NCBI GenBank assembly: GCA_044892505.1
Contig: JBJFYY010000101.1
Coordinates: 1 to 54,701, forward strand
Direction: 5' to 3'
Length of the DNA: 54,701 nucleotides
DNA from: Schmidtea nova
Taxonomy: Eukaryota
This document shows, one piece after another, positions 1-42,303 of this stretch. A program made the position numbers and the translations under genes. The notes below the pieces were generated by a model. That model saw only the letters and a program-made list of their open reading frames with translations. It searched no databases and was not told the DNA's origin. Every line of letters starts with the position of its first letter. The stretch's first letter is position 1.

Positions 1-177
1 AAATAAAAATACGAAAACATCTCACTACTACAATTCTAATGTAAGGTTAACTATTAATCAACAACAAATAAACAAAACACATAGAAAGTATATCAAATCT
101 TATACGAGATTAAATAAACCATAAAATACCTACAAACCGTGATACAAAAAGGTCAAACCTTCTCTAATATTTGTAAC
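1..177 (-). rRNA. rrnL: 16S-like large subunit rRNA, 5' part (truncated by window edge)
   Basis: Same sequence as 23183-23358, which is contiguous with conserved rrnL motifs. Confidence 0.8.
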
Positions 178-247
178 ATGAAGAAATTAAGTTGTAATCT
201 TAATAAAAATTAGTTAGTAGCAAATCGTCCATATACTTGTTCTTCAC
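178..247 (-). tRNA. trnS1: tRNA-Ser(AGN), D-armless, anticodon ACU
   Basis: TGAAGAA/TTCTTCA acceptor, loop CT-ACT-AA, T-arm ATTAAG/CTTAAT; expected position before rrnL. Confidence 0.7.
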
Positions 248-250
248 AAT

Positions 251-312
251 GACTTGTAGTTAGTAACTATCGCGATAATAAAATAAGGCTATCCATAAAA
301 ATAGGACAAGTC
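251..312 (-). other. tRNA-like element X with no assignable anticodon
   Basis: Perfect 7-bp GACTTGT/ACAAGTC acceptor-like stem, AGTT/AACT T-arm, GATAG/TTATC stem with a 10-nt loop. Confidence 0.45.
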
Positions 313-314
313 TG

Positions 315-384
315 GATGAAGAAGTTAAGTTGTAATCTTAACTGAAATAGCTTATAGCGAATCATCCAGTACGTGTTCTTCATC
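315..384 (-). pseudogene. Diverged duplicate of trnS1 (loop CT-ATA-AG)
   Basis: GATGAAGAA/TTCTTCATC stem and GTTAAG-ATTACAA-CTTAAC arm mirror trnS1; anticodon arm degraded. Confidence 0.6.
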
Positions 385-443
385 AAATGTCATAAAAGAT
401 CTATTATTTGGAAAATAATCATAATATATTATACTAACATAAG
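383..443 (-). tRNA. trnG: tRNA-Gly(UCC)
   Basis: ATTAT-TT-TCC-AA-ATAAT anticodon arm. Confidence 0.85.
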
Positions 444-448
444 AATAA

Positions 449-516
449 ATTCTGAAGAGCAAAAAACCCACCTATACATTTACAATGTAATCTTCTAGAA
501 ATTAAAATACTCAGAA
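449..516 (-). tRNA. trnY: tRNA-Tyr(GUA)
   Basis: TTCTGAG/TTCAGAA acceptor; TACA-TT-GTA-AA-TGTA. Confidence 0.9.
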
Positions 517-519
517 AAC

Positions 520-587
520 CATAAAAGAAACCCCATAAGATTTATAATCAAGACCTAAACTTGAAGCATTACCTCTGCCACATTTAC
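520..587 (-). tRNA. trnL1: tRNA-Leu(UAG)
   Basis: TGGCAGAG D-arm; TCAAG-TT-TAG-GT-CTTGA. Confidence 0.9.
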
Positions 588-1311
588 AAGCACAATTTCT
601 ATTATGCTTACCATGTTACGACTTAACTCTTCATATAAAAATCAGAGATTGACGGGCGGTATGTACTAAGTTCAAGAAAAAATTCACAACAACCAAATTA
701 TTTAACTATTACTATTTAGTCCTACCTAACACCCATCTTTTCACCAAGTATCTTACAATGTAGCAAAGAAATAATCCTAAGAAATGCAGCACAATGATTT
801 GCAGTAAAGAAAACCTAGAAACTAAGCTATCCATCAGTTGTACAACCGTACACTAGCAACCAACATTTGATTCTAGGCAAAATAATAAGTGAATACTCTC
901 TTCTAATCCCATGCTCCCCAAACAATTTAAACAACTGCCAAGTCATTTCATTTCGATGTGGTAATAAAATAACAAATCCTTATAAATAAGTAACAAATCA
1001 TGTCTAAAAAGGAATTTAGAATAAGATGAGCAACAAACCTTACCATAAATTAAACACAAAATAGTATGTTAAAACTCAAACTATTTACACCAACATTTAA
1101 ACCAAATAGAATTACAAAGTGTAACCGCAGAAGCTGGCACTCAATTTATCTCCTATATTACAAATGTTAACTTAAACAATAGCTAAAGATTAAATTTTTA
1201 AAAACACACGTCTAACAAAAACCACGAACTAAAACGAAAGTGATAGCAAACAACAAATTACTTATAACGTTTATAACTTGTAAGTTTAAAAAGCCAAGAC
1301 AAAACTCTAAG
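588..1311 (-). rRNA. rrnS: 12S-like small subunit rRNA
   Basis: Minus strand carries AAGTCGTAACATGGTAAG, GTACATACCGCCCGTC and GTGCCAGC-TTC-TGCGGT SSU motifs; ends set by flanking tRNAs. Confidence 0.95.
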
Positions 1312-1376
1312 TGTTTCAAGAAAAAACCTTCAACTGAGATCCTTCAAAACCCTGCTTTAAATTAAGCTATCGAAAC
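1312..1376 (-). tRNA. trnF: tRNA-Phe(GAA)
   Basis: GTTTCGA/TTGAAAC acceptor; GGGTT-TT-GAA-GG-ATCTC. Confidence 0.9.
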
Positions 1377-1377
1377 A

Positions 1378-1439
1378 AGAAAAAGTGCAAAACAACCGAT
1401 AACTCCACAAATTACCATTCTAAAATAAACTACTTTAAC
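1378..1439 (-). tRNA. trnH: tRNA-His(GUG)
   Basis: GGTAAT-TT-GTG-GA-GTTATC anticodon arm. Confidence 0.85.
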
Positions 1440-1441
1440 AA

Positions 1442-1504
1442 TGTGAAAGGGAATTACTCGATTACAGAATATGAATCTATCAGTTTAAATTAACTTACCA
1501 ACAC
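1442..1504 (-). tRNA. trnM: tRNA-Met(CAU)
   Basis: ATAGA-TT-CAT-AT-TCTGT anticodon arm; TAAGTT..AAACT D-arm. Confidence 0.85.
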
Positions 1505-2139
1505 CAAACAAACAAAAAAAATCGCCTGAAAGCTAGATCTCCGCTAAATCGCCGCCGCCGCAAAAGAAAAATAAACAAACAAAAGAAAAATAAACAAAAC
1601 AAAAACAAAGAAAACAAACAAAGTTTAAATCAGTTTCTAGTTTCTTAGTGTTTACAGAATTTTGTTGTTAAGGGAGTTGTTTTGTTACAAAGTTATTTTG
1701 TTTATCATTAAGTGCGCCACTATTAGCTTCGCTAATGTTATTAAATCGCTATGCAACATAGTTATTTTACTTATTATTAAGTGTGCTACTATTAGCTTCG
1801 CTAATACAATAAGTCGCTGTATGACATAATTATTTTACATATTACTAATATACAATAAGTATATTCATAGAAACATGCTTACAAGTATCTTTCTATTCAT
1901 ATACTTATTGACTTAATTCTCTATGCTAGCTATATTCTACTTATTATATTACTTATCTATAAGCGCGCTATAGTTAGCTTCGCTAACATTATACTTATCA
2001 TTTAACTTATTTATTTTATAAATACAATGTATTTATACAATAAATATACTCATAAAAACATGTTTACAAACATCTTTCTATTCGTATATTTATTGACTTA
2101 GTTTTTTTATTCGTGCTTATTACTTAATGTTTACCATAA

Positions 2140-2752
2140 TTTTCTTCTCTATACCTATATATATTAATATACAATATTCAATAAGTGCTTCAGATAAGTC
2201 TTTGTCTTTATTTTCGATTCTCTACAATAAAAACAAAACCTTATTCTTGCACATAATGAATAGTTGTACATTAATATATATCAATAAGCCCACATCCGTG
2301 AGGCTGAAGCGATCTAAAGTGCAGGTTACCCTATTAACATTATAAGCGTTAATTTTAACATATAATAAAAATATAATAATAAAAAAGACGATTCCCATTC
2401 AAATTCACAAAATCAATTTGTGATTTTCATCCTTTCGTATCGTCTCTTTCATTATTAATTTTTTATATAGTAAAAATAAGCCACTTATAAAGTAAATAAG
2501 ATAACCATGACAATCTGTGAGCCGTGACTTCGTTAAGTACCTCGTTGTAAGCATAGTCTGAGCATATCGTGCTTAATCATTCCAGATTAAAATTTTGAAG
2601 TAAATTTTATATAAATGGTTAAAGAATAGGGTACCCAACAGCCTGCGGTATTTGTGACCTGGTCTGTTTCCTTCGTACCCTCTCCTCTAAGCCATTTCCA
2701 CAAAATTTCATCAATAATTTTAAACTTGCAGATAAGCCACGATAACACTCAG
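2140..2752. repeat. ~613-bp direct repeat, copy a
   Basis: Recurs almost identically at +1140 (3280-3892). Confidence 0.95.
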
Positions 2753-2754
2753 AT

Positions 2755-3275
2755 TAACAAAATAAGTATATAAATAATATATAATAATTACTCAGATAAG
2801 TTTATTTATTTATTTACGGTTTTTGCTACCTGCAATAAATAAACAATCTTATTTTCGTAATTAATATATATTCTTTATACACACAAAGCCAAGTACACAA
2901 ATAAACACACAATAAGTATTCAGATAAGTTTATTTATTTATTTACGGTTTTTTTGCTACCTGCAATAAATAAACAACCTTATTTTCATACTTAATGTCTG
3001 TTTCTTTATGTACACTTAACTAAGTATATAAATAAACACACAATAAGTATTCAGATAAGTTTATTTATTTATTTACGGTTTTTTGCTACCTGCAATAAAT
3101 AAACAACCTTATTTTCATACTTAATGTATGTTTCTTTATATACACAAAGCTGAGCACATAGATTAATATATGATAATTACTCAGATAAGCTTATTTATTT
3201 ATTTACGGTTTTGACACCTGCAATAAATAAACAATCTCATTCTCGTACTTAACATATATTAATCCTCGTGCTTTA
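2755..3275. repeat. Four tandem ~130-bp hairpin repeats
   Basis: TCAGATAAG-TTTATTTATT...AATAAATAAAC at 2792, 2920, 3051, 3181. Confidence 0.9.
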
Positions 3276-3279
3276 CAAA

Positions 3280-3892
3280 TTTCTTTCTCTATACCTTATA
3301 TATTTAATATACAATATTCAATAAGTGCTTCAGATAAGTCTTTGTCTTTATTTTCGATTCTCTACAATAAAAACAAAACCTTATTCTTGCACATAATGAA
3401 TAGTTGTACATTAATATATATCAATAAGCCCACATCCGTGAGGCTGAAGAGATCTAAAGTGCAGGTTACCCTATTAACATTATAAGCGTTAATTTTAACA
3501 TATAATAAAAATATAATAATAAAAAAGACGATTCCCATTCAAATTCACAAAATCAATTTGTGATTTTCATCCTTTCGTATCGTCTCTTTCATTATTAATT
3601 TTTATTATAGTAAAAATAAGCCACTTATAAAGTAAATAAGATAACCATGACAATCTGTGAGCCGTGACTTCGTTAAGTACCTCGTTGTAAGCATAGTCTG
3701 AGCATATCGTGCTTAATCATTCCAGATTAAAATTTTGAAGTAAATTTTATATAAATGGTTAAAGAATAGGGTACCCAACAGCCTGCGGTATTTGTGACCT
3801 GGTCTGTTTCCTTCGTACCCTCTCCTTTAAGCCATTTCCACAAAATTTCATCAATAATTTTAAACTTGCAGATAAGCCACGATAACACTCAG
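3280..3892. repeat. ~613-bp direct repeat, copy b
   Basis: Matches 2140-2752. Confidence 0.95.
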
Positions 3893-3905
3893 CAAAACGT
3901 ATAAG

Positions 3906-4310
3906 CCTTTACATAGATAAACATAGATAATTTCTACAATTATATGTGTTTATAAGTGTGTATTATAAACCCTGTATTTAATATTCTTTAACAATTATGT
4001 TTCTTATCAGTGTTCTTAATTTTTGTCACGAACTCAAGCGAAGCACGTAAAGAAGCTTTAAAAGACTCTGCGCTTACCAGCCTGCTGCCGCTTGGTACTG
4101 TGTTTCTTAACGCTACGCAGTCGCTTGAGGCTTGTGCTTTCGCTAAACCCAGACACGTCTCATCTCGCTTCTTTGCTTTTCGTTCTACACAAAAAAGAAG
4201 AAGCACAGAAAAGTAACCCAATTGCTAAACAATATTAAAGACATTGTTTATAACACACCCTGATAAACACAGATAATTCTAAAAATTATCTATGTTTACC
4301 TATATAAAGG
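3906..4310. repeat. ~400-bp imperfect inverted repeat (giant hairpin) with GC-rich core
   Basis: Four pairs of reverse-complementary blocks nested around ~4105. Confidence 0.85.
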
Positions 4311-4430
4311 ACCACAACTTTGTAAATATATACGTATATTATATAGCTAAGTAACTATATACTAAAGTATATCGCTACTTAACTATATAATATACATATA
4401 TATTTAACCTATAAGTCTTAAATATCTCCA

Positions 4431-5133
4431 TATCATATATATATAGATAAGTAACTATATACTTACAGTATATAGATACTTAACTATATATATATAATAT
4501 GACATAATGTAAGTAAAATAAGTAAAAAAAACTAAGCAATAAACGAGTAGAATAATGAGTTCACAAACTCATTTTTTTTTTTTTTTTTTTAATAGCAAAG
4601 GAATAAGAAATTATTCAAAAAAAAAATAATTTCTTAACTCATACTTCTCCTCATTTATTACATGTTTTGTTTACTTATGTTACATACATTATGTCATATC
4701 ATATATATATAGATAAGTATCTATATACTGTAAGTATATAGTTACTTATCTATATATATATGATATGTCTCTATTTAAGACCCAATGTTTTACCATAATT
4801 TACATATTATATATATATAGATAAGTAACTATATACTTACAGTATATAGATACTTAACTATATATATATAATATGACATAATGTAAGTAAAATAAGTAAA
4901 AAAACTAAGTAATAAACGAGTAGAATAATGAGTTCACAAACTCATTTTTTTTTTTTTTTTTTTACTTCCATCTCCTATTAAGACTTAGTTTAAAAAAAAA
5001 ATAAGTTCTTAACTCATACATCTCCTCATTTATTACATATTTTGTTTACTTATTGTACATACATTATGTCATATTATATATATATAGATAAGTATCTATA
5101 TACTTTAAGTATATAGTACTTATCTATATATAT
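4431..5133. repeat. AT-rich palindromic modules with poly-T and short stem-loops, two tandem copies
   Basis: 4431-4500 is the reverse complement of ~4685-4765; module repeats at ~4806-5133. Confidence 0.85.
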
Positions 5134-9261: not shown

Positions 9262-9750
9262 CTAAACCTTAGTACTAAAGCGGGGACCGTTAAAGTAATT
9301 ACGTACCTTAATCAAAATATTAACTAGTCTGTTCAACTGGTGGCAAGGAATATACAAAATGTAATAAAACAAACCAAACCCAGATAAAAAAGTCAAAAAA
9401 CGAAGCTCAAGCTTCAAAATAAATATATAAATATCCAAACTAATTACTAAAAGACGACGACAACGATATTCCTCCTTTTCCATAGAGCTAACGTTAAAAA
9501 ACTTAAAGTAAATAATACCGAATCAATAGAAGTACAAACAAAAAAAACGAAAAAAAGAGTTATAATACAAAGGAGCTAAAGAATGTAAAAAGCTCAAAAA
9601 CTTACGAATTACTCAGACAAGACCACTACCAACACCTAAACCATAATAAAAAATACCAGAATGCTTATAATAAACTCAAACAAAAATATAAAGTATAACA
9701 AAAACCAGGAGCAAAGTACTATACGAAAACAAATTTGATGTATGAACCAT
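9262..9750 (-). CDS. 162-aa ORF starting MVHTSNLFSY; putative extended ATP synthase subunit 8-like protein
   Basis: ATG 2 nt after the nad2 stop, open under code 9 to TAG; N-terminal hydrophobic helix; same T/G-rich composition as the genes. The atp8 identity is inferred from position and topology only. Confidence 0.7.
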
Positions 9751-9752
9751 TT

Positions 9753-10700
9753 CTAGGTTATAATGTAGTAAATATAGTACAAACTAAATAGAGAAGAAAG
9801 GATTAAAGAAGAAAAACTAAACAAATAACTATAATTAGAATGAAAAAACAAATCAGATAAAACTAAGACCATTATATACATGGATAAAACTATGATACTA
9901 ACCAACAACAATAAAACAAAAGAACTATTTATAGTCAAGGGTGTTGCCAACAAAAACAACACAAACTTACAAGCAAACAGAATAAAAGGAGGGAAACCTG
10001 TTAAAGTAACATATAAAACTAATACTAAGTAAACAGACATATTTTTTAACTGGCTAAAATCATATAATGTCTGAACGTTATTATTGTAAATCAAATAAAC
10101 AAATAATCTAAAAATCAATACTAAATAAACCAACCAATACTTCAAAGCACAATCAGAAGAAATTGTACAAATAAAAACAAACCAACTCGTGTGGAAAGTG
10201 GAAGATCAAAACAAATAGTATGCTAAATCTCGATAAACTGATAACATGTAAAACAAAGAAATCAAGGAAACCACAAGACAACAAAAACCAAACTCAGAGT
10301 AAGGTAGCTTTGCTAAACCTATGTAAACAAAACAATAAACAGACTTATGTATAACCAACATAAAAAACAAAACTAAATAGTTAAAATAAGAAACAACTGG
10401 AAAAAACCACCAAAACAAAGGAAAAAAAGACAACTTAAACAAAACTGCTAAAGACAAAAAAAAAGTCTCCCTATAAATAGAAGACCATATAATAAAGATA
10501 TCGCTAATTAAGGTAAACAAGAAATAAACAAAAACACCCAAATTTATGCTATAGTTATTAAAATAATTTAAAAGCATCATTGCTCTTAAAGATTTTAAAA
10601 GAACATAAAAATAGAATTTAGCATAACTTAACCTAAAAATCAGCATAAAAGAAGAGTAAAAATATATTCCTCAATAACTAAAAAGCAATACGTGTAGCAA
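9753..10700 (-). CDS. nad2: NADH dehydrogenase subunit 2 (TTG start)
   Basis: Single frame under code 9; LFKLSFFPLFWW and LTGFPPFILF motifs. Confidence 0.9.
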
Positions 10701-17051: not shown

Positions 17052-18867
<1,816 letters not shown>

Positions 18868-18875
<8 letters not shown>

Positions 18876-19140
18876 GCTTAGGTGGGATATGTTCAACAGG
18901 AATGCCTGGTGCAGTATAAGAAGGCCAAGCTATGCACCAATACATAAGACATATCCAAGCATACATAAACAAAGCAAACATAACTAAAGCACCAAAACTA
19001 CCAAATAACCTTGAAAAAAAACGCTTCTTATAATAATCAGAATTACCAGGATTCACAACCTTGGCAGAACTACTGCTAGTAACAGAGAGTTTTAAAACAA
19101 CAGACTTAGAAACTAATAAACCATTGCTAACAACATTCAT
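18868..19140 (-). CDS. Orphan 90-aa ORF with one predicted transmembrane helix
   Basis: ATG to TAA on the coding strand, filling the nad4-cox1 gap; identical in copy 2; no recognisable homology. Confidence 0.55.
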
Positions 19141-19197
19141 ATGTTACAAGACATGTAAATCAAAGATAAAACAAAAATTTACCTTCCATTTGCAACT

Positions 19198-20556
19198 TTA
19201 AATAATTAGCGAATTCACTAATAAGATTGATAGAAAACAAACTACCCTAATAAAAAAGAATCCCAAATAAATACCAAAATCAGATATGTAACTGAAAGAG
19301 ACTAAGTTGGAACTGTAACCAGAAGAAACTAGAAGATAAAACAAGACACAATAAAAACCACAAAATAAAACATTGATAAACATAAAAATAAAAGAGAAAT
19401 AAGCAATATTATGACACAAATAAATAAAAATAACTTCAGAAAAAAAACCCAAACTAAAAGGAAATGAACAATTTAAAACAAGAAACAAAGTTACAAAAAA
19501 AACAAACAGAGAGTAAACATACAAATAACCTCGATTTAAATAAAAACTACGAGAATGCGTTAAAGAAAACATATATCCAGAACTAACAAACAAACCAAAA
19601 GAAACAAGACCATGAGAAAAAGACAAAATTAAAGCAGCTAACAAAGAAAATGAACTACCAGACCAAAAAGTAAGAGAAACCAAAGACATGTGTACTATTG
19701 AAGAATAAGCTATAAAAGACTTTCTATCAAACTGACGAGTAGTACTATATTTAGACATAAACACACTAAAACATAAATAAACAAACAGAAAAGAAAATAT
19801 AAAATGAAGATAATACAAACCAAACAAAGAATTAAAGTAGCGAATAACACCATAAACGCCTAGCTTAACCATCAGAGAAGCTAACAAAACAGAACCAACT
19901 ACCGGAGCTTCGACATGTGCCTTTGGTAACCAGGAGTGTAACCCTCAAACAGGAAACTTAAAAAAGAAACCTAAAACAATAATTAAAAAATAAAACCTAA
20001 ATAACCAACCTAACCCTAAACTAACATAATCAGAAGACAAAGTCAACAAAAATAGTAATGAGCCAAAAAAAACAGAAGAATCAACAATAACATACAACAA
20101 AGAAACAACAAAAAAAACAGGAAGAGAACCACAAAAAGAATATATTAAAAAATAACTGACCGCCTCTATACGCTCTGGTTTATAACCCCAAACAACAATA
20201 ATCAAATAAATTAAGAAAAATGAAAACTCAAAAAATACAAATACATATAACATGTTTTTGGACGAATAAAACAAAAATATACTCAGAGATACCGAAGATA
20301 ACAAAAAACAAAGAGAATGAGAAAAAAAACCATAATCAACAACAGATATAAACATAAAGACCAATAAAACCAAAAGCAAGAAAACAAAATTGAAAGAACT
20401 AACACTGAAATACAAAGAACTAAAAGAAAACAACCTAAAAAAAGAATAATTATAATATATAAAAAAATACACACACAAAAGTAAATAAAAAAAAACCAAA
20501 GAGACATAGTTTAAACAAAAGTACCTAATAGGCAATAAAAGTTTTAGAACAAACAT
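19198..20556 (-). CDS. nad4: NADH dehydrogenase subunit 4
   Basis: WGYKPERIEA, KLGVYG, KSFIAYSSIVHM and HGLVS motifs. Confidence 0.96.
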
Positions 20557-20818
20557 TAATACGCGACTCGCTATGTAAAAATTTGACTAAAACAGAAAAA
20601 CTAACTGCAGATTCAGAAACAAACAAAGCTAAAATAAACAACAACACTATAAAACCATAAAAATACAATGAAAGACCTAAAGAAACATAAACAAGAAGCA
20701 TACAGATCTCTAAAAATAAAAAAAACTTCAAAATACGAAAACTCAAACAATACAAAAAAAAGATATTCAAAAACAAAAAGAAGCCTACCAACGAATCAAC
20801 GAAACTAACTCTAATCAA
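20525..20818 (-). CDS. nad4L: NADH dehydrogenase subunit 4L (start uncertain: TTG 20818 or 20791)
   Basis: LFLEICML and FVSESAVS motifs; overlaps nad4 by 32 bp. Confidence 0.88.
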   Translation of the reverse strand: MIRVSFVDSLVGFFLFLNIFFLYCLSFRILKFFLFLEICMLLVYVSLGLSLYFYGFIVLLFILALFVSESAVSFSVLVKFLHSESRINVCSKTFIAY

Positions 20819-21876
20819 GGAAAATCAAAAAACAAAATGAAATACAAAAAATAAAAAAAAGAACTAACCACACTGACTGCCACATAAGGAGAGTCAACAG
20901 ACAACCCACCTAAAACTGTTAACAGTAAAAATTTTAAAAAAAAAAAAAAAAAAAAAATTAAATTAAAATAATCCATAACTACCATTTCCAAAGGGTAATT
21001 AAAAAATGGAATAACAAAATAAATAAATATAAAAAGAAACAGAAATATCACACCACCTAGCTTATTCGGAACAGAACGAAGAACAGCATAAGCAGCTAAA
21101 AAATATCACTCAGGCTTTATGTGGGCAGGGGTAGACAAAAATTTAGCTTCCTCAAAATTAGAACTATCAAACTGAAAAAAAGGAACAAACAAAACTAAAT
21201 ACAAAAACAAAACAAATAGAATAATAAAACCCAAAAAATCATTTATAACAAAATAAGGACTAAACATTAACGAACGTCCCTTAGAACTAATCCCTAAAGG
21301 GTTACCTCTCCCATCTACATGTAAAAAAAACAAGTGAAAAAAAATAAATAAAACTAAAACAAAAGGCAACAAGTAATGTAGAACAAAAAAACGAGATAGA
21401 GTAGGAGAAGATATTGAAAAACCACCTCACAACCAACTAACCAAAACAGAACCAAAATAAGGGACAGCAGATAGTAAGCTAGTGATAACCGTGGCACCTC
21501 ATAAAGACATTTTTCCTCAAGGAAGTACATAACCCAAAAAAGCAATGGCCATGCACAGCACAAAGATAAAACAACCAACCAATCAAGTACTGGCTCTTAA
21601 AAAACTGTATTTATATAAACCACGAAATAAGTGTAAATAAATAAAAAAAAAAAAAAAAGAAGCACCTATTCTATGTACACTACGAAATAAAAAACCAAAA
21701 AAAACCTCACGATAAAACAAGTCCAATGATTCAAAAGAACCTGAAACAGAAGGAAGATAAACAGAAGACAAAAAAAAACCAGAAACAAACTGAACAGCAA
21801 ACCAAACTAACAACAAAGAGCCAAAACATCAAAAATAATCTATTTTCTTAGGAGTGGGTAAGTATACTGTGGACAT
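20785..21876 (-). CDS. cob: Cytochrome b
   Basis: LPTP, YFWCFGSLL, LPWGKMSLWGATVIT and HIKPEWYFL motifs; single frame ATG to TAG under code 9. Confidence 0.97.
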
Positions 21877-21937
21877 CACTATCCGACGTTGGTTCAAAAA
21901 TACTATAGAAGGCACACGACTACAGAAAAACAAGGCA

Positions 21938-21996
21938 ATGAAACTGGATAAACCATTGATAAGTTAAAAACTTATTGTTATTTAAACTAAATTTAA
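21938..21996 (-). tRNA. Supernumerary trnN-derived tRNA-like gene with UUU anticodon
   Basis: ATAAG-TT-TTT-AA-CTTAT arm, GG-TTTAT-CC T-arm and ..AAATT/AGTTTCA acceptor copied from trnN. Confidence 0.55.
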
Positions 21997-21999
21997 CAA

Positions 22000-22146
22000 G
22001 ATTCAAAAGAATCTTAGACATAAGGAAGATAAACAGAAGACAAAAAAACCAGAAAAAAACTGAATAGCAAACCAAACTAACAACAAAGAGCCAAAGCATC
22101 AAAAATAATATATTTTCTTAGGAATGGGTATGTATACTGTGGACAT
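22000..22146 (-). pseudogene. Duplicated, frameshifted 5' fragment of cob
   Basis: ATG TCC ACA GTA TAC ATA CCC ATT...; 6 substitutions in the first 98 nt (5 non-synonymous), then a 2-nt deletion. Confidence 0.9.
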
Positions 22147-22205
22147 CTCTATCCACGTTGGTTCAAAAACACAGTAGAAGATACACGACTACAGAAAATA
22201 CGGCA

Positions 22206-22267
22206 ATGAAACTGGATAAACCACCAATAAGTTAACAGCTTATTATTCTTATTTAAACTAAATTTCA
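22206..22267 (-). tRNA. trnN: tRNA-Asn(GUU)
   Basis: TGAAATT/AGTTTCA acceptor; ATAAG-CT-GTT-AA-CTTAT. Confidence 0.92.
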
Positions 22268-22268
22268 C

Positions 22269-22328
22269 AGTAAGCTCTAAAAGATTGTGAAGGTTGCAAC
22301 TTCGTGTATTAAATTATACTAAACTTAC
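22269..22328 (-). tRNA. trnC: tRNA-Cys(GCA)
   Basis: GTAAGTT/AGCTTAC acceptor; GAAG-TT-GCA-AC-CTTC. Confidence 0.92.
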
Positions 22329-22329
22329 A

Positions 22330-22390
22330 AAGAAGTGGTAAATAAAACATAATCAGGCTTACAAGACCTTATACTCAAAATGACAAATCT
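22330..22390 (-). tRNA. trnT: tRNA-Thr(UGU)
   Basis: AGGT-CT-TGT-AA-GCCT; weak acceptor stem. Confidence 0.65.
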
Positions 22391-22391
22391 A

Positions 22392-22453
22392 CACTAAAGG
22401 GTAAAACCTTCAAAGGAGCTTAAATCCAACACATAAACATCTGCCACTATAGC
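22392..22453 (-). tRNA. trnL2: tRNA-Leu(UAA)
   Basis: TGGCAGA D-arm; GGA-TT-TAA-GC-TCC. Confidence 0.85.
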
Positions 22454-23358
22454 AATACAAATTAGCTTCCTTTCGTACAACAAACCTATATTCAAGATAA
22501 AAACCAACCTGATTTACATCGGTCTAAACTCAAATCACGAATAATATTACTAGTCGAACAGACTAAAAACAAAAGCAGCTTCACCAATATTTAATTACAA
22601 TTCAACATCGAGGTAGAAAACAAAATCTTCAATATGTCCTCCAAAATTCTATCTCCCTGTTATCCCTAAGGAAGTTCTGTTTAACAAATAAATTTTTAAA
22701 ACAAATACAGATACCCCAACAAATAACTTCACAAATTGCACTAAGTTTTAAACTCACTAGGGTCTTTTCGTCATTAACAATAAAAACCGAATCTTTACAG
22801 AAAAAATAAATTATAAAAACAAATCTATTAATAACTTATCGCCTATCATTAACCCATTCAAACAATTCTGAAATTATCAGACAAACAATTATGCTACCTT
22901 CGTACAGTTAAAATACTGCAGCTATTTAAATACAACATTGAGCAGAAAAATACATTTTAATAAAAAAGAAATGTTTTTAAAAAACAGTTGTAAACGCACA
23001 GAGTTATATAAAAAATAATAGAAAATAATTGTGTAATTACTAGACTGAAAGTCGCCTATTGATCAACAACCAGCTTAGACTTATTTTAAACAATCAAAAG
23101 TAATAATATTAAAAATAAAACAATAAAAAAGAACAATAAACCCAATAAACTAAAAGCTTATCCCACTCTTAAAAAAAACTAGAAATAAAAATACGAAAAC
23201 ATCTCACTACTACAATTCTAATGTAAGTTAACTATTAATCAACAACAAATAAACAAAACACATAGAAAGTATATCAAATCTTATACGAGATTAAATAAAC
23301 CATAAAATACCTACAAACCGTGATACAAAAAGGTCAAACCTTCTCTAATATTTGTAAC
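22454..23358 (-). rRNA. rrnL: 16S-like large subunit rRNA
   Basis: Minus strand carries CGTGATTTGAGTTTAGACCGATGTAAATCAGG, ACCTCGATGTTG, TAGGGATAACAG and AAGACCCTAGTGAG LSU motifs. Confidence 0.95.
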
Positions 23359-23766
23359 ATGAAGAAATTAAGTTGTAATCTTAATAAAAATTAGTTAGTA
23401 GCAAATCGTCCATATACTTGTTCTTCACAATGACTTGTAGTTAGTAACTATCGCGATAATAAAATAAGGCTATCCATAAAAATAGGACAAGTCTGGATGA
23501 AGAAGTTAAGTTGTAATCTTAACTGAAATAGCTTATAGCGAATCATCCAGTACGTGTTCTTCATCAAATGTCATAAAAGATCTATTATTTGGAAAATAAT
23601 CATAATATATTATACTAACATAAGAATAAATTCTGAAGAGCAAAAACCCACCTATACATTTACAATGTAATCTTCTAGAAATTAAAATACTCAGAAAACC
23701 ATAAAAGAAACCCATAAGATTTATAATCAAGACCTAAACTTGAAGCATTACCTCTGCCACATTTAC
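23359..23766 (-). tRNA. Copy 2 cluster: trnS1, element X, trnS1-like, trnG, trnY, trnL1
   Basis: Same sequence as 178-587. Confidence 0.85.
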
Positions 23767-24490
23767 AAGCACAATTTCTATTATGCTTACCATGTTACGA
23801 CTTAACTCTTCATATAAAAATCAGAGATTGACGGGCGGTATGTACTAAGTTCAAGAAAAAATTCACAACAACCAAATTATTTAACTATTACTATTTAGTC
23901 CTACCTAACACCCATCTTTTCACCAAGTATCTTACAATGTAGCAAAGAAATAATCCTAAGAAATGCAGCACAATGATTTGCAGTAAAGAAAACCTAGAAA
24001 CTAAGCTATCCATCAGTTGTACAACCGTACACTAGCAACCAACATTTGATTCTAGGCAAAATAATAAGTGAATACTCTCTTCTAATCCCATGCTCCCCAA
24101 ACAATTTAAACAACTGCCAAGTCATTTCATTTCGATGTGGTAATAAAATAACAAATCCTTATAAATAAGTAACAAATCATGTCTAAAAAGGAATTTAGAA
24201 TAAGATGAGCAACAAACCTTACCATAAATTAAACACAAAATAGTATGTTAAAACTCAAACTATTTACACCAACATTTAAACCAAATAGAATTACAAAGTG
24301 TAACCGCAGAAGCTGGCACTCAATTTATCTCCTATATTACAAATGTTAACTTAAACAATAGCTAAAGATTAAATTTTTAAAAACACACGTCTAACAAAAA
24401 CCACGAACTAAAACGAAAGTGATAGCAAACAACAAATTACTTATAACGTTTATAACTTGTAAGTTTAAAAAGCCAAGACAAAACTCTAAG
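23767..24490 (-). rRNA. rrnS: rrnS, copy 2
   Basis: Same as 588-1311. Confidence 0.95.
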
Positions 24491-24683
24491 TGTTTCAAGA
24501 AAAAACCTTCAACTGAGATCCTTCAAAACCCTGCTTTAAATTAAGCTATCGAAACAAGAAAAAGTGCAAAACAACCGATAACTCCACAAATTACCATTCT
24601 AAAATAAACTACTTTAACAATGTGAAAGGGAATTACTCGATTACAGAATATGAATCTATCAGTTTAAATTAACTTACCAACAC
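24491..24683 (-). tRNA. Copy 2 cluster: trnF, trnH, trnM
   Basis: Same as 1312-1504. Confidence 0.88.
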
Positions 24684-27600
24684 CAAACAAACAAAAAAAA
24701 TCGCCTGAAAGCTAGATCTCCGCTAAATCGCCGCCGCCGCAAAAGAAAAATAAACAAACAAAAGAAAAATAAACAAAACAAAAACAAAGAAAACAAACAA
24801 AGTTTAAATCAGTTCTAGTTTCTTAGTGTTTACAGAATTTTGTTGTTAAGGGAGTTGTTTTGTTACAAAGTTATTTTGTTTATCATTAAGTGCGCCACTA
24901 TTAGCTTCGCTAATGTTATTAAATCGCTATGCAACATAGTTATTTTACTTATTATTAAGTGTGCTACTATTAGCTTCGCTAATACAATAAGTCGCTGTAT
25001 GACATAATTATTTTACATATTACTAATATACAATAAGTATATTCATAGAAACATGCTTACAAGTATCTTTCTATTCATATACTTATTGACTTAATTCTCT
25101 ATGCTAGCTATATTCTACTTATTATATTACTTATCTATAAGCGCGCTATAGTTAGCTTCGCTAACATTATACTTATCATTTAACTTATTTATTTTATAAA
25201 TACAATGTATTTATACAATAAATATACTCATAAAAACATGTTTACAAACATCTTTCTATTCGTATATTTATTGACTTAGTTTTTTTATTCGTGCTTATTA
25301 CTTAATGTTTACCATAATTTTCTTCTCTATACCTATATATATTAATATACAATATTCAATAAGTGCTTCAGATAAGTCTTTGTCTTTATTTTCGATTCTC
25401 TACAATAAAAACAAAACCTTATTCTTGCACATAATGAATAGTTGTACATTAATATATATCAATAAGCCCACATCCGTGAGGCTGAAGCGATCTAAAGTGC
25501 AGGTTACCCTATTAACATTATAAGCGTTAATTTTAACATATAATAAAAATATAATAATAAAAAAGACGATTCCCATTCAAATTCACAAAATCAATTTGTG
25601 ATTTTCATCCTTTCGTATCGTCTCTTTCATTATTAATTTTTATTATAGTAAAAATAAGCCACTTATAAAGTAAATAAGATAACCATGACAATCTGTGAGC
25701 CGTGACTTCGTTAAGTACCTCGTTGTAAGCATAGTCTGAGCATATCGTGCTTAATCATTCCAGATTAAAATTTTGAAGTAAATTTTATATAAATGGTTAA
25801 AGAATAGGGTACCCAACAGCCTGCGGTATTTGTGACCTGGTCTGTTTCCTTCGTACCCTCTCCTCTAAGCCATTTCCACAAAATTTCATCAATAATTTTA
25901 AACTTGCAGATAAGCCACGATAACACTCAGATTAACAAAATAAGTATATAAATAATATATAATAATTACTCAGATAAGTTTATTTATTTATTTACGGTTT
26001 TTGCTACCTGCAATAAATAAACAATCTTATTTTCGTAATTAATATATATTCTTTATACACACAAAGCCAAGTACACAAATAAACACACAATAAGTATTCA
26101 GATAAGTTTATTTATTTATTTACGGTTTTTTGCTACCTGCAATAAATAAACAACCTTATTTTCATACTTAATGTCTGTTTCTTTATGTACACTTAACTAA
26201 GTATATAAATAAACACACAATAAGTATTCAGATAAGTTTATTTATTTATTTACGGTTTTTTGCTACCTGCAATAAATAAACAACCTTATTTTCATACTTA
26301 ATGTATGTTTCTTTATATACACAAAGCTGAGCACATAGATTAATATATGATAATTACTCAGATAAGCTTATTTATTTATTTACGGTTTTGACACCTGCAA
26401 TAAATAAACAATCTCATTCTCGTACTTAACATATATTAATCCTCGTGCTTTACAAATTTCTTTCTCTATACCTATATATATTAATATACAATATTCAATA
26501 AGTGCTTCAGATAAGTCTTTGTCTTTATTTTCGATTCTCTACAATAAAAACAAAACCTTATTCTTGCACATAATGAATAGTTGTACATTAATATATATCA
26601 ATAAGCCCACATCCGTGAGGCTGAAGAGATCTAAAGTGCAGGTTACCCTATTAACATTATAAGCGTTAATTTTAACATATAATAAAAATATAATAATAAA
26701 AAAGACGATTCCCATTCAAATTCACAAAATCAATTTGTGATTTTCATCCTTTCGTATCGTCTCTTTCATTATTAATTTTTATTATAGTAAAAATAAGCCA
26801 CTTATAAAGTAAATAAGATAACCATGACAATCTGTGAGCCGTGACTTCGTTAAGTACCTCGTTGTAAGCATAGTCTGAGCATATCGTGCTTAATCATTCC
26901 AGATTAAAATTTTGAAGTAAATTTTATATAAATGGTTAAAGAATAGGGTACCCAACAGCCTGCGGTATTTGTGACCTGGTCTGTTTCCTTCGTACCCTCT
27001 CCTTTAAGCCATTTCCACAAAATTTCATCAATAATTTTAAACTTGCAGATAAGCCACGATAACACTCAGCAAAACGTATAAGCCTTTACATAGATAAACA
27101 TAGATAATTTCTACAATTATATGTGTTTATAAGTGTGTATTATAAACCCTGTATTTAATATTCTTTAACAATTATGTTTCTTATCAGTGTTCTTAATTTT
27201 TGTCACGAACTCAAGCGAAGCACGTAAAGAAGCTTTAAAAGACTCTGCGCTTACCAGCCTGCTGCCGCTTGGTACTGTGTTCTTAACGCTACGCAGTCGC
27301 TTGAGGCTTGTGCTTTCGCTAAACCCAGACACGTCTCATCTCGCTTCTTTGCTTTTCGTTCTACACAAAAAAGAAGAAGCACAGAAAAGTAACCCAATTG
27401 CTAAACAATATTAAAGACATTGTTTATAACACACCCTGATAAACACAGATAATTCTAAAAATTATCTATGTTTACCTATATAAAGGACCACAACTTTGTA
27501 AATATATACGTATATTATATAGCTAAGTAACTATATACTAAAGTATATCGCTACTTAACTATATAATATACATATATATTTAACCTATAAGTCTTAAATA

Positions 27601-30600
27601 TCTCCATATCATATATATATAGATAAGTAACTATATACTTACAGTATATAGATACTTAACTATATATATATAATATGACATAATGTAAGTAAAATAAGTA
27701 AAAAAAACTAAGCAATAAACGAGTAGAATAATGAGTTCACAAACTCATTTTTTTTTTTTTTTTTTTAATAGCAAAGGAATAAGAAATTATTCAAAAAAAA
27801 AATAATTTCTTAACTCATACTTCTCCTCATTTATTACATGTTTTGTTTACTTATGTTACATACATTATGTCATATCATATATATATAGATAAGTATCTAT
27901 ATACTGTAAGTATATAGTTACTTATCTATATATATATGATATGTCTCTATTTAAGACCCAATGTTTTACCATAATTTACATATTATATATATATAGATAA
28001 GTAACTATATACTTACAGTATATAGATACTTAACTATATATATATAATATGACATAATGTAAGTAAAATAAGTAAAAAAACTAAGTAATAAACGAGTAGA
28101 ATAATGAGTTCACAAACTCATTTTTTTTTTTTTTTTTTTACTTCCATCTCCTATTAAGACTTAGTTTAAAAAAAAAATAAGTTCTTAACTCATACATCTC
28201 CTCATTTATTACATATTTTGTTTACTTATTGTACATACATTATGTCATATTATATATATATAGATAAGTATCTATATACTTTAAGTATATAGTACTTATC
28301 TATATATATNNNNNNNNNNNNNNNNNNNNNNNNNNNNNNNNNNNNNNNNNNNNNNNNNNNNNNNNNNNNNNNNNNNNNNNNNNNNNNNNNNNNNNNNNNN
28401 NNNNNNNNNNNNNNNNNNNNNNNNNNNNNNNNNNNNNNNNNNNNNNNNNNNNNNNNNNNNNNNNNNNNNNNNNNNNNNNNNNNNNNNNNNNNNNNNNNNN
28501 NNNNNNNNNNNNNNNNNNNNNNNNNNNNNNNNNNNNNNNNNNNNGCTTACCTTTAAGGGGGTTTTTTTCCGTACATACGAATAAGTACGAGAGACAACTT
28601 TCACCTTGCCTCGTAAAGAAAAAGTTAGACAATGATCCTTTCACCATCTGCAACTCAAATAGAACATACTAATAACACTCATTAAATAACAAATTGTTAA
28701 ATAATTAAATGCAATAGCAGTCCTAAAACCTGGATCTTATCCGCGTAATTATTTTACCAACCAGTTCTGGTCTCGACATATCCTACGTCCGTCCGTAAAG
28801 TGTAGGAACTTCTGAACACCTTGCCCCCAAGTTAGGTGGGCTCTAGCAGCTGCATACCGAAATGCTACCTTGTGCATCGACTACCTTAATCGCGTCTTCT
28901 ATGTTAGGTTTAAAGTTCAAGCTTCTGTTTGCCAATGGGCGAAGATATACAATATTTCATGAAATCGCCTCAGCGTGCAACGAGGTGTGTATAACAATAG
29001 GCTCATTACGATACCTACAAAACTTTTTAAAGTCTTCACTCTCTAATACTATATGATATATGCTTAATACAATATATTACTNNNNNNNNNNNNNNNNNNN
29101 NNNNNNNNNNNNNNNNNNNNNNNNNNNNNNNNNNNNNNNNNNNNNNNNNNNNNNNNNNNNNNNNNNNNNNNNNNNNNNNNNNNNNNNNNNNNNNNNNNNN
29201 NNNNNNNNNNNNNNNNNNNNNNNNNNNNNNNNNNNNNNNNNNNNNNNNNNNNNNNNNNNNNNNNNNNNNNNNNNNNNNNNNNNNNNNNNNNNNNNNNNNN
29301 NNNNNNNNNNNNNNNNNNNNNNNNNNNNNNNNNNNNNNNNNNNNNNNNNNNNNNNNNNNNNNNNNNNNNNNNNNNNNNNNNNNNNNNNNNNNNNNNNNNN
29401 NNNNNNNNNNNNNNNNNNNNNNNNNNNNNNNNNNNNNNNNNNNNNNNNNNATACACCCCCTTCCCCCCTCTATAAAACCAACCAAACAAAACCATCCCTA
29501 TCAAAATACCAAAGTTTCATCCAGGCTTATAAAAGAGAAGACACGAAAGTAACAATCAAGGTGCTGATTACCACAGATTGTTATGTGTCTTATCATTTAT
29601 GAGCTTATAAAAACTAAACCTTAATCAACAAAACAAAATCCCCCACTAAAACCAATATAACACAAGTTCAAACTACCATATAATTTTCATGTGCCAGCAA
29701 AAAAAAAAAAAAATAACTACTGGAAGGCCTAACAGCCTCTCAGTAGTGAGAAAACACTTTCAAACAATTAAGGGCCTTTTTGTGAACAAGGTTATAGAGA
29801 GTTTGTAAAACCCATCAAAAACCAAATTTATGCTACACAAAATGCCTTTAAACCAATGTCAGTTTCAATCACAGGCCATTTTGTGGATAAATTTGTCACT
29901 AACTCTAAAACAAACACAATTTACAAACCATTTACCACCAAGCTATCAAAATTCAACTAATCAAAAACTATGTTATAAAATAATTGTTTAAAATCAGATT
30001 TAAAAACAAATTTAAAACACAAAAAACATTTTCAAAAAATTAATAAAAATTACCGTACTTTAGTTCACCATTTTACGGTCAAAATAGCGTTTGCAATACC
30101 ACTATATTGCAAGTCATTTTTGTAGAGAAATTTGCCACTAAATTTAAGTTTTAAAAAACTAAAATAAATGACAAAATTCTCAACATAAAATAACTAACAT
30201 AATAAACATAATTTTAAACTATACAATAAACATAGTTTTAAAAACAAACACACATTTAAAAAGCCATTTAGGACCCAGCTAACAAAATTCAACTAATCAA
30301 AAACTATGTTATAAAATAATTGTTTAAAATCAGATTTAAAAACAAATTTAAAACACAAAAAACATTTTCAAAAAATTAATAAAAATTACCGTACTTTAGT
30401 TCACCATTTTACGGTCAAAATAGCGTTTGCAATACCACTATATTGCAAGTCATTTTTGTAGAGAAATTTGCCACTAAATTTAAGTTTTAAAAAACTAAAA
30501 TAAATGACAAAATTCTCAACATAAAATAACTAACATAATAAACATAATTTTAAACTATACAATAAACATAGTTTTAAAAACAAACACACATTTAAAAAGC

Positions 30601-40213: not shown

Positions 40214-42030
<1,817 letters not shown>

Positions 42031-42038
<8 letters not shown>

Positions 42039-42303
42039 GCTTAGGTGGGATATGTTCAACAGGAATGCCTGGTGCAGTATAAGAAGGCCAAGCTATGCAC
42101 CAATACATAAGACATATCCAAGCATACATAAACAAAGCAAACATAACTAAAGCACCAAAACTACCAAATAACCTTGAAAAAAAACGCTTCTTATAATAAT
42201 CAGAATTACCAGGATTCACAACCTTGGCAGAACTACTGCTAGTAACAGAGAGTTTTAAAACAACAGACTTAGAAACTAATAAACCATTGCTAACAACATT
42301 CAT
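42031..42303 (-). CDS. Orphan 90-aa ORF, copy 2
   Basis: Identical translation in the ORF track. Confidence 0.55.

Follow-up and report, generated by a model that had tools for sequence, protein, structure and literature searches.

A coding-like 90-codon frame overlapping the start of cox1 in a triclad mitochondrial genome, a candidate for an unannotated protein gene

Flatworm mitochondrial genomes are annotated with 12 proteins, 13 in some. A 90-codon open frame (ORF90) that lies between nad4 and cox1 in a triclad mitochondrial genome raises the question of whether it is a further protein gene, a part of cox1 or a leftover of the leader between the two. The window, the whole 54.7-kb stretch of DNA analysed here, holds this genome repeated head-to-tail as a concatemer, with all genes on the minus strand and read with code 9. 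The local gene order is cytb, nad4L, nad4, ORF90, cox1, trnE (17041-16975, minus strand), nad6 and nad5, and the same order is the pattern of the planarian family Dugesiidae (PMC12870015; PMC12192195); trnM, trnH and trnF are located before rrnS and trnF is absent between nad4 and cox1. Gene pairs free of an intervening tRNA also occur elsewhere in the mitogenome (cytb/nad4L/nad4 and nad6/nad5). Gene lengths in the window differ from those in the published S. mediterranea tables. ORF90 recurs at a distance of 23,163 bp (other stretches at 23,162 to 23,182 bp, the copies differing by small indels), and concatemer copies 1 and 2 are without any difference over 18796-28540. Gaps set the copies apart in the long non-coding repeat region (1-5133 against 23183-28309; 99.8% identity, 8 gap openings), and over this region and the stretches around the runs of N the copy-to-copy register shifts from 23,162 to 23,182.

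An earlier note, made from the letters of this DNA, had described a clean ATG-to-TAA frame of 90 codons with an in-frame stop upstream, identical in both copies and positioned between nad4 and cox1. Each of these points held. ORF90 runs on the minus strand from 19140 to 18868, a TAA lies two codons before its ATG (...L-stop-HMNVV), its second copy (42031-42303, minus strand) is identical to the first, and it is flanked by the TAA stop codon of nad4 (19200-19198, minus strand) and by the conserved core of cox1, which begins at about 18597 (core and stop, 17052-18596, minus strand). The residues quoted in that note were correct overall, except where code 9 applies, which reads AAA as Asn and AGG as Ser. 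The frame is open under code 9 and, because it contains no in-frame TGA, under codes 4, 5 and 11 as well; the plus strand opposite holds ORFs of 32-46 codons only.

On a strand this rich in T, where out-of-frame and non-coding ORFs of 60-112 codons are numerous, the openness of a frame says little by itself, and we therefore scored codon usage with a model built from eleven bona fide genes of the mitogenome, expressed in nats per codon. ORF90 scored 0.395-0.40 when read in frame and below zero in both alternative frames. All bona fide genes scored below it (0.145-0.347), and chance ORFs, whether in non-coding DNA (0.151 at most) or in wrong frames of genes, were far below; among all open stretches of at least 60 codons in the mitogenome, the ORF90 score is the maximum. 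When sequences of ORF90 composition were generated, the frame stayed open in 2.5% of mononucleotide shuffles and in 1.05% of first-order Markov sequences, and none of the stop-free ones reached the ORF90 score (0/1520 and 0/632, 0/2152 in total; z about 5). T occupies 61% of third positions in ORF90 (57% in the third positions of the genes), against 32% of first and 37% of second positions, a pattern that would be expected if the encoded residues were under selection now or very recently. ORF90 is more than a chance ORF; it is gene-like. By the same score, the open frame that follows nad2 (9265-9783, minus strand), which is the '?' ORF or atp8 candidate of Ross et al., reaches 0.27 nats per codon and falls in the range of genes.

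The earlier note had also reported a single hydrophobic stretch in the product, and hydropathy places one such stretch, and no other, at residues 46-72. Together with charge and AlphaFold2, this defines a predicted transmembrane helix (18925-19005, minus strand) preceded by the basic patch YYKKRFF. The N-terminal 45 residues are Ser/Val-rich, of low complexity and carry a net charge of +4, and the tail of 18 residues is Pro-rich. AlphaFold2, run without an alignment, modelled residues 32-75 as a single long helix; for the 10-residue blocks that make up residues 41-70, mean pLDDT was 83-92. A T-rich strand readily gives hydrophobic stretches, and the predicted helix is weak evidence.

The relation of ORF90 to its downstream neighbour is closer than the earlier note had it, since the note missed that the two frames overlap. 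The cox1 frame, +1 relative to ORF90, opens at 18929 and continues for 625 codons; its conserved core begins at about codon 112 and the first 111 codons are without ATG. This Met-less extension of cox1 covers the last 62 nt of ORF90. Likewise unnoticed was a TTG at 18875-18873 that overlaps the end of ORF90 by 8 nt. The junction, TTGGTTAA (18868-18875, minus strand), divides into C-TTG-GTT-AAG in the frame of cox1 and into CTT-GGT-TAA in that of ORF90, with the ORF90 TAA at 18870-18868. Over the overlap, the sliding codon-usage score is 0.54 in the ORF90 frame vs -0.18 in the cox1 frame: the coding signal changes frame at the ORF90 TAA, following ORF90 before it and cox1 only after it. From the TTG, the extension comprises 93 codons (18597-18875, minus strand; the frame itself is open from 18929) with about two hydrophobic segments.

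Extended cox1 genes of triclads were described by Ross et al. 2016, who also found that drops in RNA-seq coverage do not fit the annotated cox1 start and proposed TTG as a common start codon (PMC4856072). Three TTG codons are available as cox1 starts here, at 18896, 18875 and 18851. The one at 18875 yields a COX1 of 607 aa, and published annotations list COX1 at 606 aa for both biotypes of S. mediterranea (TTG start) and at 604 aa for Girardia (ATG start) (PMC4856072 Tables S1-S3). Of the seven genes preceded by a tRNA, six have TTG as their first or second codon in frame past the tRNA 3' end, which speaks for frequent initiation at TTG in this genome; the genes examined include nad2 (10706), nad3 (11124), cox2 (12104), nad1 (13052), atp6 (13755) and cox3 (14745), all on the minus strand.

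Upstream, nad4 and ORF90 are separated by a 55-nt spacer (19142-19196, minus strand) that folds into a tRNA-like shape of modest stability only (-12.6 kcal/mol, z -1.78). Its closing stem of 7 bp is acceptor-like (GUUGCAA/UUGUAAC, 19196-19190 with 19149-19143), it contains a 9-bp hairpin with a 7-nt loop (UUUUUGU), and a single A at 19142 follows the stem in the manner of a discriminator base. No tRNA was called between nad4 and cox1, and neither Rfam nor relaxed ARAGORN recognises the spacer. In other, non-dugesiid triclads, trnF sits at this site, directly before a cox1 that starts with ATG (PMC12870015; PMC4856072 Table S4). The spacer is probably a tRNA-like processing signal, and it may be a relic of trnF that was retained as such, in the shape of an armless tRNA.

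Public sequencing runs provide two putative RNA ends at the borders of this spacer. Runs that contain the sequence date from 2024; Nextera ends and the ends of Oxford Nanopore cDNA primers both occur in them, in keeping with the comparative-genome study of Schmidtea, in which ATAC-seq and the PCS109/PCS111 cDNA kits were used (PMC11410931). We take the genome to be that of a dugesiid, probably of a Schmidtea species. One contig of run X3 has 12 loose T before 19197 (plus strand), which represent a poly(A) tail of the nad4 message, joined after 19197 at the stop codon. A second X3 contig spans 18921-19141 at a depth of 593 and continues as the reverse complement of TTTCTGTTGGTGCTGATATTGCT+T, where TTTCTGTTGGTGCTGATATTGCT is the standard Nanopore tail, which doubles as strand-switching primer, as judged by its occurrence in 233 nanopore papers. 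The primer junction, which is without the usual GGG, puts a 5' end one base upstream of the ATG, at 19141. Each end comes from one assembled contig of X3, a run that is cDNA-like and not on record as RNA; a search for RNA runs yielded none on record. Both ends fit the borders of the acceptor-like stem (19196 and 19143; one contig each) and are therefore placed at the positions expected for cleavage of a tRNA by RNase P and RNase Z. The mature mRNA thus appears to begin with U-AUG (19141/19140). An mRNA that starts at or near its AUG is normal for animal mitochondria, and the start codons of other genes in this genome lie at, or a few bases from, the 3' ends of tRNAs. No RNA end was listed between 19140 and 18597, a region over which contigs cannot show a continuous transcript. 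In another X3 contig, 20495 is followed by 13 A (plus strand), within nad4; a priming artefact could explain these, as could a poly(A) site, whether internal or antisense.

We read ORF90 as the translated first cistron of a two-gene ORF90-cox1 mRNA that encodes a putative single-pass inner-membrane protein, and we give this reading about an even chance of being correct. It is favoured because the coding signal of ORF90 reaches its TAA, the TTG gives a COX1 of dugesiid length, TTG starts are frequent, tRNA-free gene pairs exist in this genome, and the parity of membrane topology is preserved. On the last point, ORF90 would contribute one helix and the cox1 extension about two hydrophobic segments; the orientation of the COX1 core is kept only if the two are separate, which favours two proteins. 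The processing enzymes, the translation, the membrane topology and any association of ORF90 with complex IV are parts of the model that we infer, and the steps would be as follows. The primary transcript would be cut on both sides of the 55-nt tRNA-like hairpin, at the trnF site of other triclads, leaving a nad4 message that ends at its stop codon plus poly(A) and a new mRNA that starts U-AUG at 19141/19140. Mitoribosomes would initiate at the 5'-terminal AUG and make a 90-residue protein with its positive N-terminal half in the matrix, one helix in the inner membrane and its Pro-rich tail in the intermembrane space. Translation of ORF90 would stop at the TAA (18870-18868), and COX1, N-terminally extended as in all triclads, would have an initiation of its own at the TTG, eight bases ahead of where the ORF90 stop codon ends. 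Of the two options in the earlier note, an accessory subunit confined to the lineage or a piece split off from a cox1 leader, the evidence fits an ORF90 that is physically, and probably translationally, tied to cox1 and lineage-specific: it is coding-like, probably at the 5' end of the cox1 mRNA, abutting and overlapping the likely cox1 start, and devoid of detectable relatives.

Such an arrangement has counterparts among the classical overlapping pairs of mitochondrial genes. As in atp8/atp6 and nad4L/nad4, a short single-helix protein (the helix of ORF90 being predicted) would come first at a tRNA-free junction, and the downstream start overlaps the upstream stop in another frame (here the candidate TTG and the TAA, +1). 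Unlike in those pairs, the partner is cox1 and the downstream start would be TTG. ORF90 itself is not to be equated with ATP8 (PF00895), an assignment that we rejected: there is no Pfam match at E<=10 and no similarity, the N-terminus is MNVV and not of the MPQL type, and the helix lies at residues 46-72, in the C-terminal half, which is the opposite of the ATP8 layout with its N-terminal helix.

The closest comparison at the level of gene order is S. mediterranea, where nad4 is also followed by cox1 without an intervening trnF, and where cox1, annotated from a TTG, likewise carries a 5' extension free of Met and some 100 codons long (606 aa vs 607 aa here; PMC4856072). The 426-427 nt between nad4 and this start are labelled non-coding in S. 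mediterranea (PMC4856072), whereas here an intact, strongly coding-like 90-codon frame stands at the apparent 5' end of the mRNA; the nad4-to-TTG interval is 322 nt here vs 426 nt there, which makes the present sequence one of a related species or haplotype. Ross et al. report that the nad4-cox1 region is not conserved among triclads, and in Girardia only 25 nt separate the two genes (PMC4856072). ORF90 is therefore at best lineage-restricted.

Database searches agree with a lineage-specific sequence in that ORF90 has no detectable relative in the databases searched. No Pfam family matched at E<=10, a word-indexed search gave no candidate, comparison with PDB sequences gave noise only, and no relative was found in metagenome, viral or prokaryote-genome contigs. 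The mitogenome itself holds no paralogue, and ORF90 is similar neither to the ORF after nad2 nor to the cox1 extension and resembles trnF only weakly. HMMER, run over 1.84 billion representatives, returned one match, to a 27-residue Ser/Val low-complexity stretch of a 1689-aa protein; we rejected it as a relative on the grounds of its low complexity and because BLASTP did not reproduce it. In the ESM Atlas, N-terminal fragments of the Na/K-ATPase beta chain came up at 0.87, below the 0.9 level, and kinship was likewise rejected, the likeness being read as one of generic signal-anchor features. A search for related mitogenomes based on cox1 gave best matches of 64% and 62% identity, none of them close.

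This lack of relatives also suits the view that ORF90 is a leftover without a selected product, a long 5' leader, perhaps incidentally translated and free to decay, which would derive from a former in-frame cox1 leader or from a remnant of the departure of the trnM-trnH-trnF block. We consider this possible, if rather unlikely. It would account for a region that has no equivalent in Girardia (25 nt), departs by some 100 nt from its length in S. mediterranea and was seen to be unconserved among triclads by Ross et al. (PMC4856072), and it is in keeping with the low-complexity, Ser/Val-rich N-terminal half and with the chance ORFs of 60-112 codons that this strand produces. Decay should nevertheless erase the coding signal and add stop codons, and the codon periodicity of ORF90 is above that of real genes and unmatched by chance ORFs or shuffles. 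Moreover, the frame spans exactly from the 5'-terminal AUG of the mRNA to just past the start of cox1, and a leftover would imply an untranslated leader of 266 nt. A leader of this length would be exceptional for an animal mitochondrial mRNA.

A second alternative, which we find doubtful, makes ORF90 the N-terminus of COX1 itself: translation would start at the AUG at 19140 and shift by +1 at GGU-UAA-G (18873-18867), skipping U while the stop codon in the A site acts as a slow codon, to give a COX1 of about 695 residues. Sites of +1 frameshifting usually have a zero-frame stop at the shift point (RF2, antizyme), and the ORF90 stop provides this layout. From the ATG at 19140 to the cox1 stop there are 2089 nt (3n+1), which is near the 2103 nt of Phagocata gracilis cox1, whose ATG lies 2 nt after trnF (PMC4856072 Table S4), a likeness in length only. 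It further speaks for a shift that the switch of frame is limited to the last 8 nt of ORF90, that the cox1 extension is without ATG, and that the extra base is real in independent runs (no indels, four runs). A shift is, however, not obligatory with TTG starts at hand at 18896, 18875 and 18851, one of them at the right place to give the COX1 length of S. mediterranea and Girardia. There is also no slippery codon in the P site, as GGU cannot re-pair on GUU, and no stable RNA structure downstream of the stop (z -0.36), and joining a further helix to an extension of two segments would reverse the orientation of the COX1 core. Programmed +1 frameshifts are known in animal mitochondria from bird and turtle nad3, ant cytb and genes of glass sponges. 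As in these, a single extra base, confirmed in the DNA, stands between two open frames; unlike here, theirs lie inside a conserved core and are unavoidable, whereas the one proposed here would precede a plausible start, in a lineage-specific extension.

The integrity of the locus was assessed on Logan contigs from four runs of two studies (X2, X3, X6 and X5), aligned to 18400-20600. These contigs contain no insertion or deletion over that interval, at a sequencing depth above 100,000 in X2 and X6, and a fifth run, X1, contains all sampled 31-mers. As no indel appears in independent contigs, both ORF90 and the offset of its frame against cox1 are genuine features of the DNA. No polymorphism was seen inside ORF90 in the contigs of X2, X3, X6 and X5, and the only two variants found lie outside it, both in X5: one at 18849 turns TTG into TTA and is synonymous in the cox1 extension, and one at 18625 changes TTA (Leu) to TGA (Trp), also in the extension. 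X5 is a 'soil metagenome' run that contains this planarian mitogenome at low depth. Just downstream of ORF90, within the cox1 extension, the two copies in the window disagree at a homopolymer, a difference that the earlier note also missed; it is G5 in copy 1 (18795-18799) and G6 in copy 2 (41958-41963). The extra G would sever the cox1 extension from its TTG, and in copy 2 the frame that leads into the cox1 core meets a stop six codons upstream of the G run. Contigs of the four runs match copy 1 (G5), and the G6 probably reflects either an error of long-read sequencing or rare heteroplasmy. That ORF90, or its split from cox1, is an assembly artefact of long-read homopolymer error is thus highly improbable, for although this one discrepancy exists and ORF90 contains a run of eight T, the frame is the same in both copies, contigs from four runs (very deep in X2 and X6) show no indel over 18400-20600, and every sampled 31-mer is present in X1.

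Returning to ORF90 as the first cistron of a shared message, we regard it as a concrete and well-supported candidate for an unannotated protein gene, which would fall into the loose class of lineage-specific mitochondrial ORFans. With the triclad '?' ORF and the F-orf and M-orf of bivalves it has in common that it is a short, lineage-restricted ORF on the coding strand, without homologue and with a predicted transmembrane helix. It differs in being attached to the cox1 mRNA and not stand-alone; the '?' ORF is moreover conserved among triclads, whereas ORF90 is known here from one mitogenome. With the bivalve ORFs of doubly uniparental inheritance (DUI) the likeness is an analogy only, as nothing here concerns sex-linked mtDNA. 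A narrower proposal, which we put forward tentatively and hold to be unlikely, is that ORF90 is a lineage-specific small subunit or assembly partner of cytochrome oxidase, born when a one-base split detached the front of the COX1 extension, and made from the same mRNA as COX1. If that proposal were true, a flatworm mitogenome would contain a 14th protein gene, one that arose by fission of a gene within mtDNA.

If ORF90 is translated, annotations of triclad mitogenomes miss a gene, and cox1 shares its mRNA with a second gene. The long-standing question of where the extended cox1 of triclads begins would then have a concrete answer, either a TTG that overlaps the upstream stop codon or a +1 shift at that place. 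ORF90 would also offer a tractable case for the origin of new small membrane proteins in mtDNA, in a model organism for which RNA interference, proteomics and long-read transcriptomes are already at hand.
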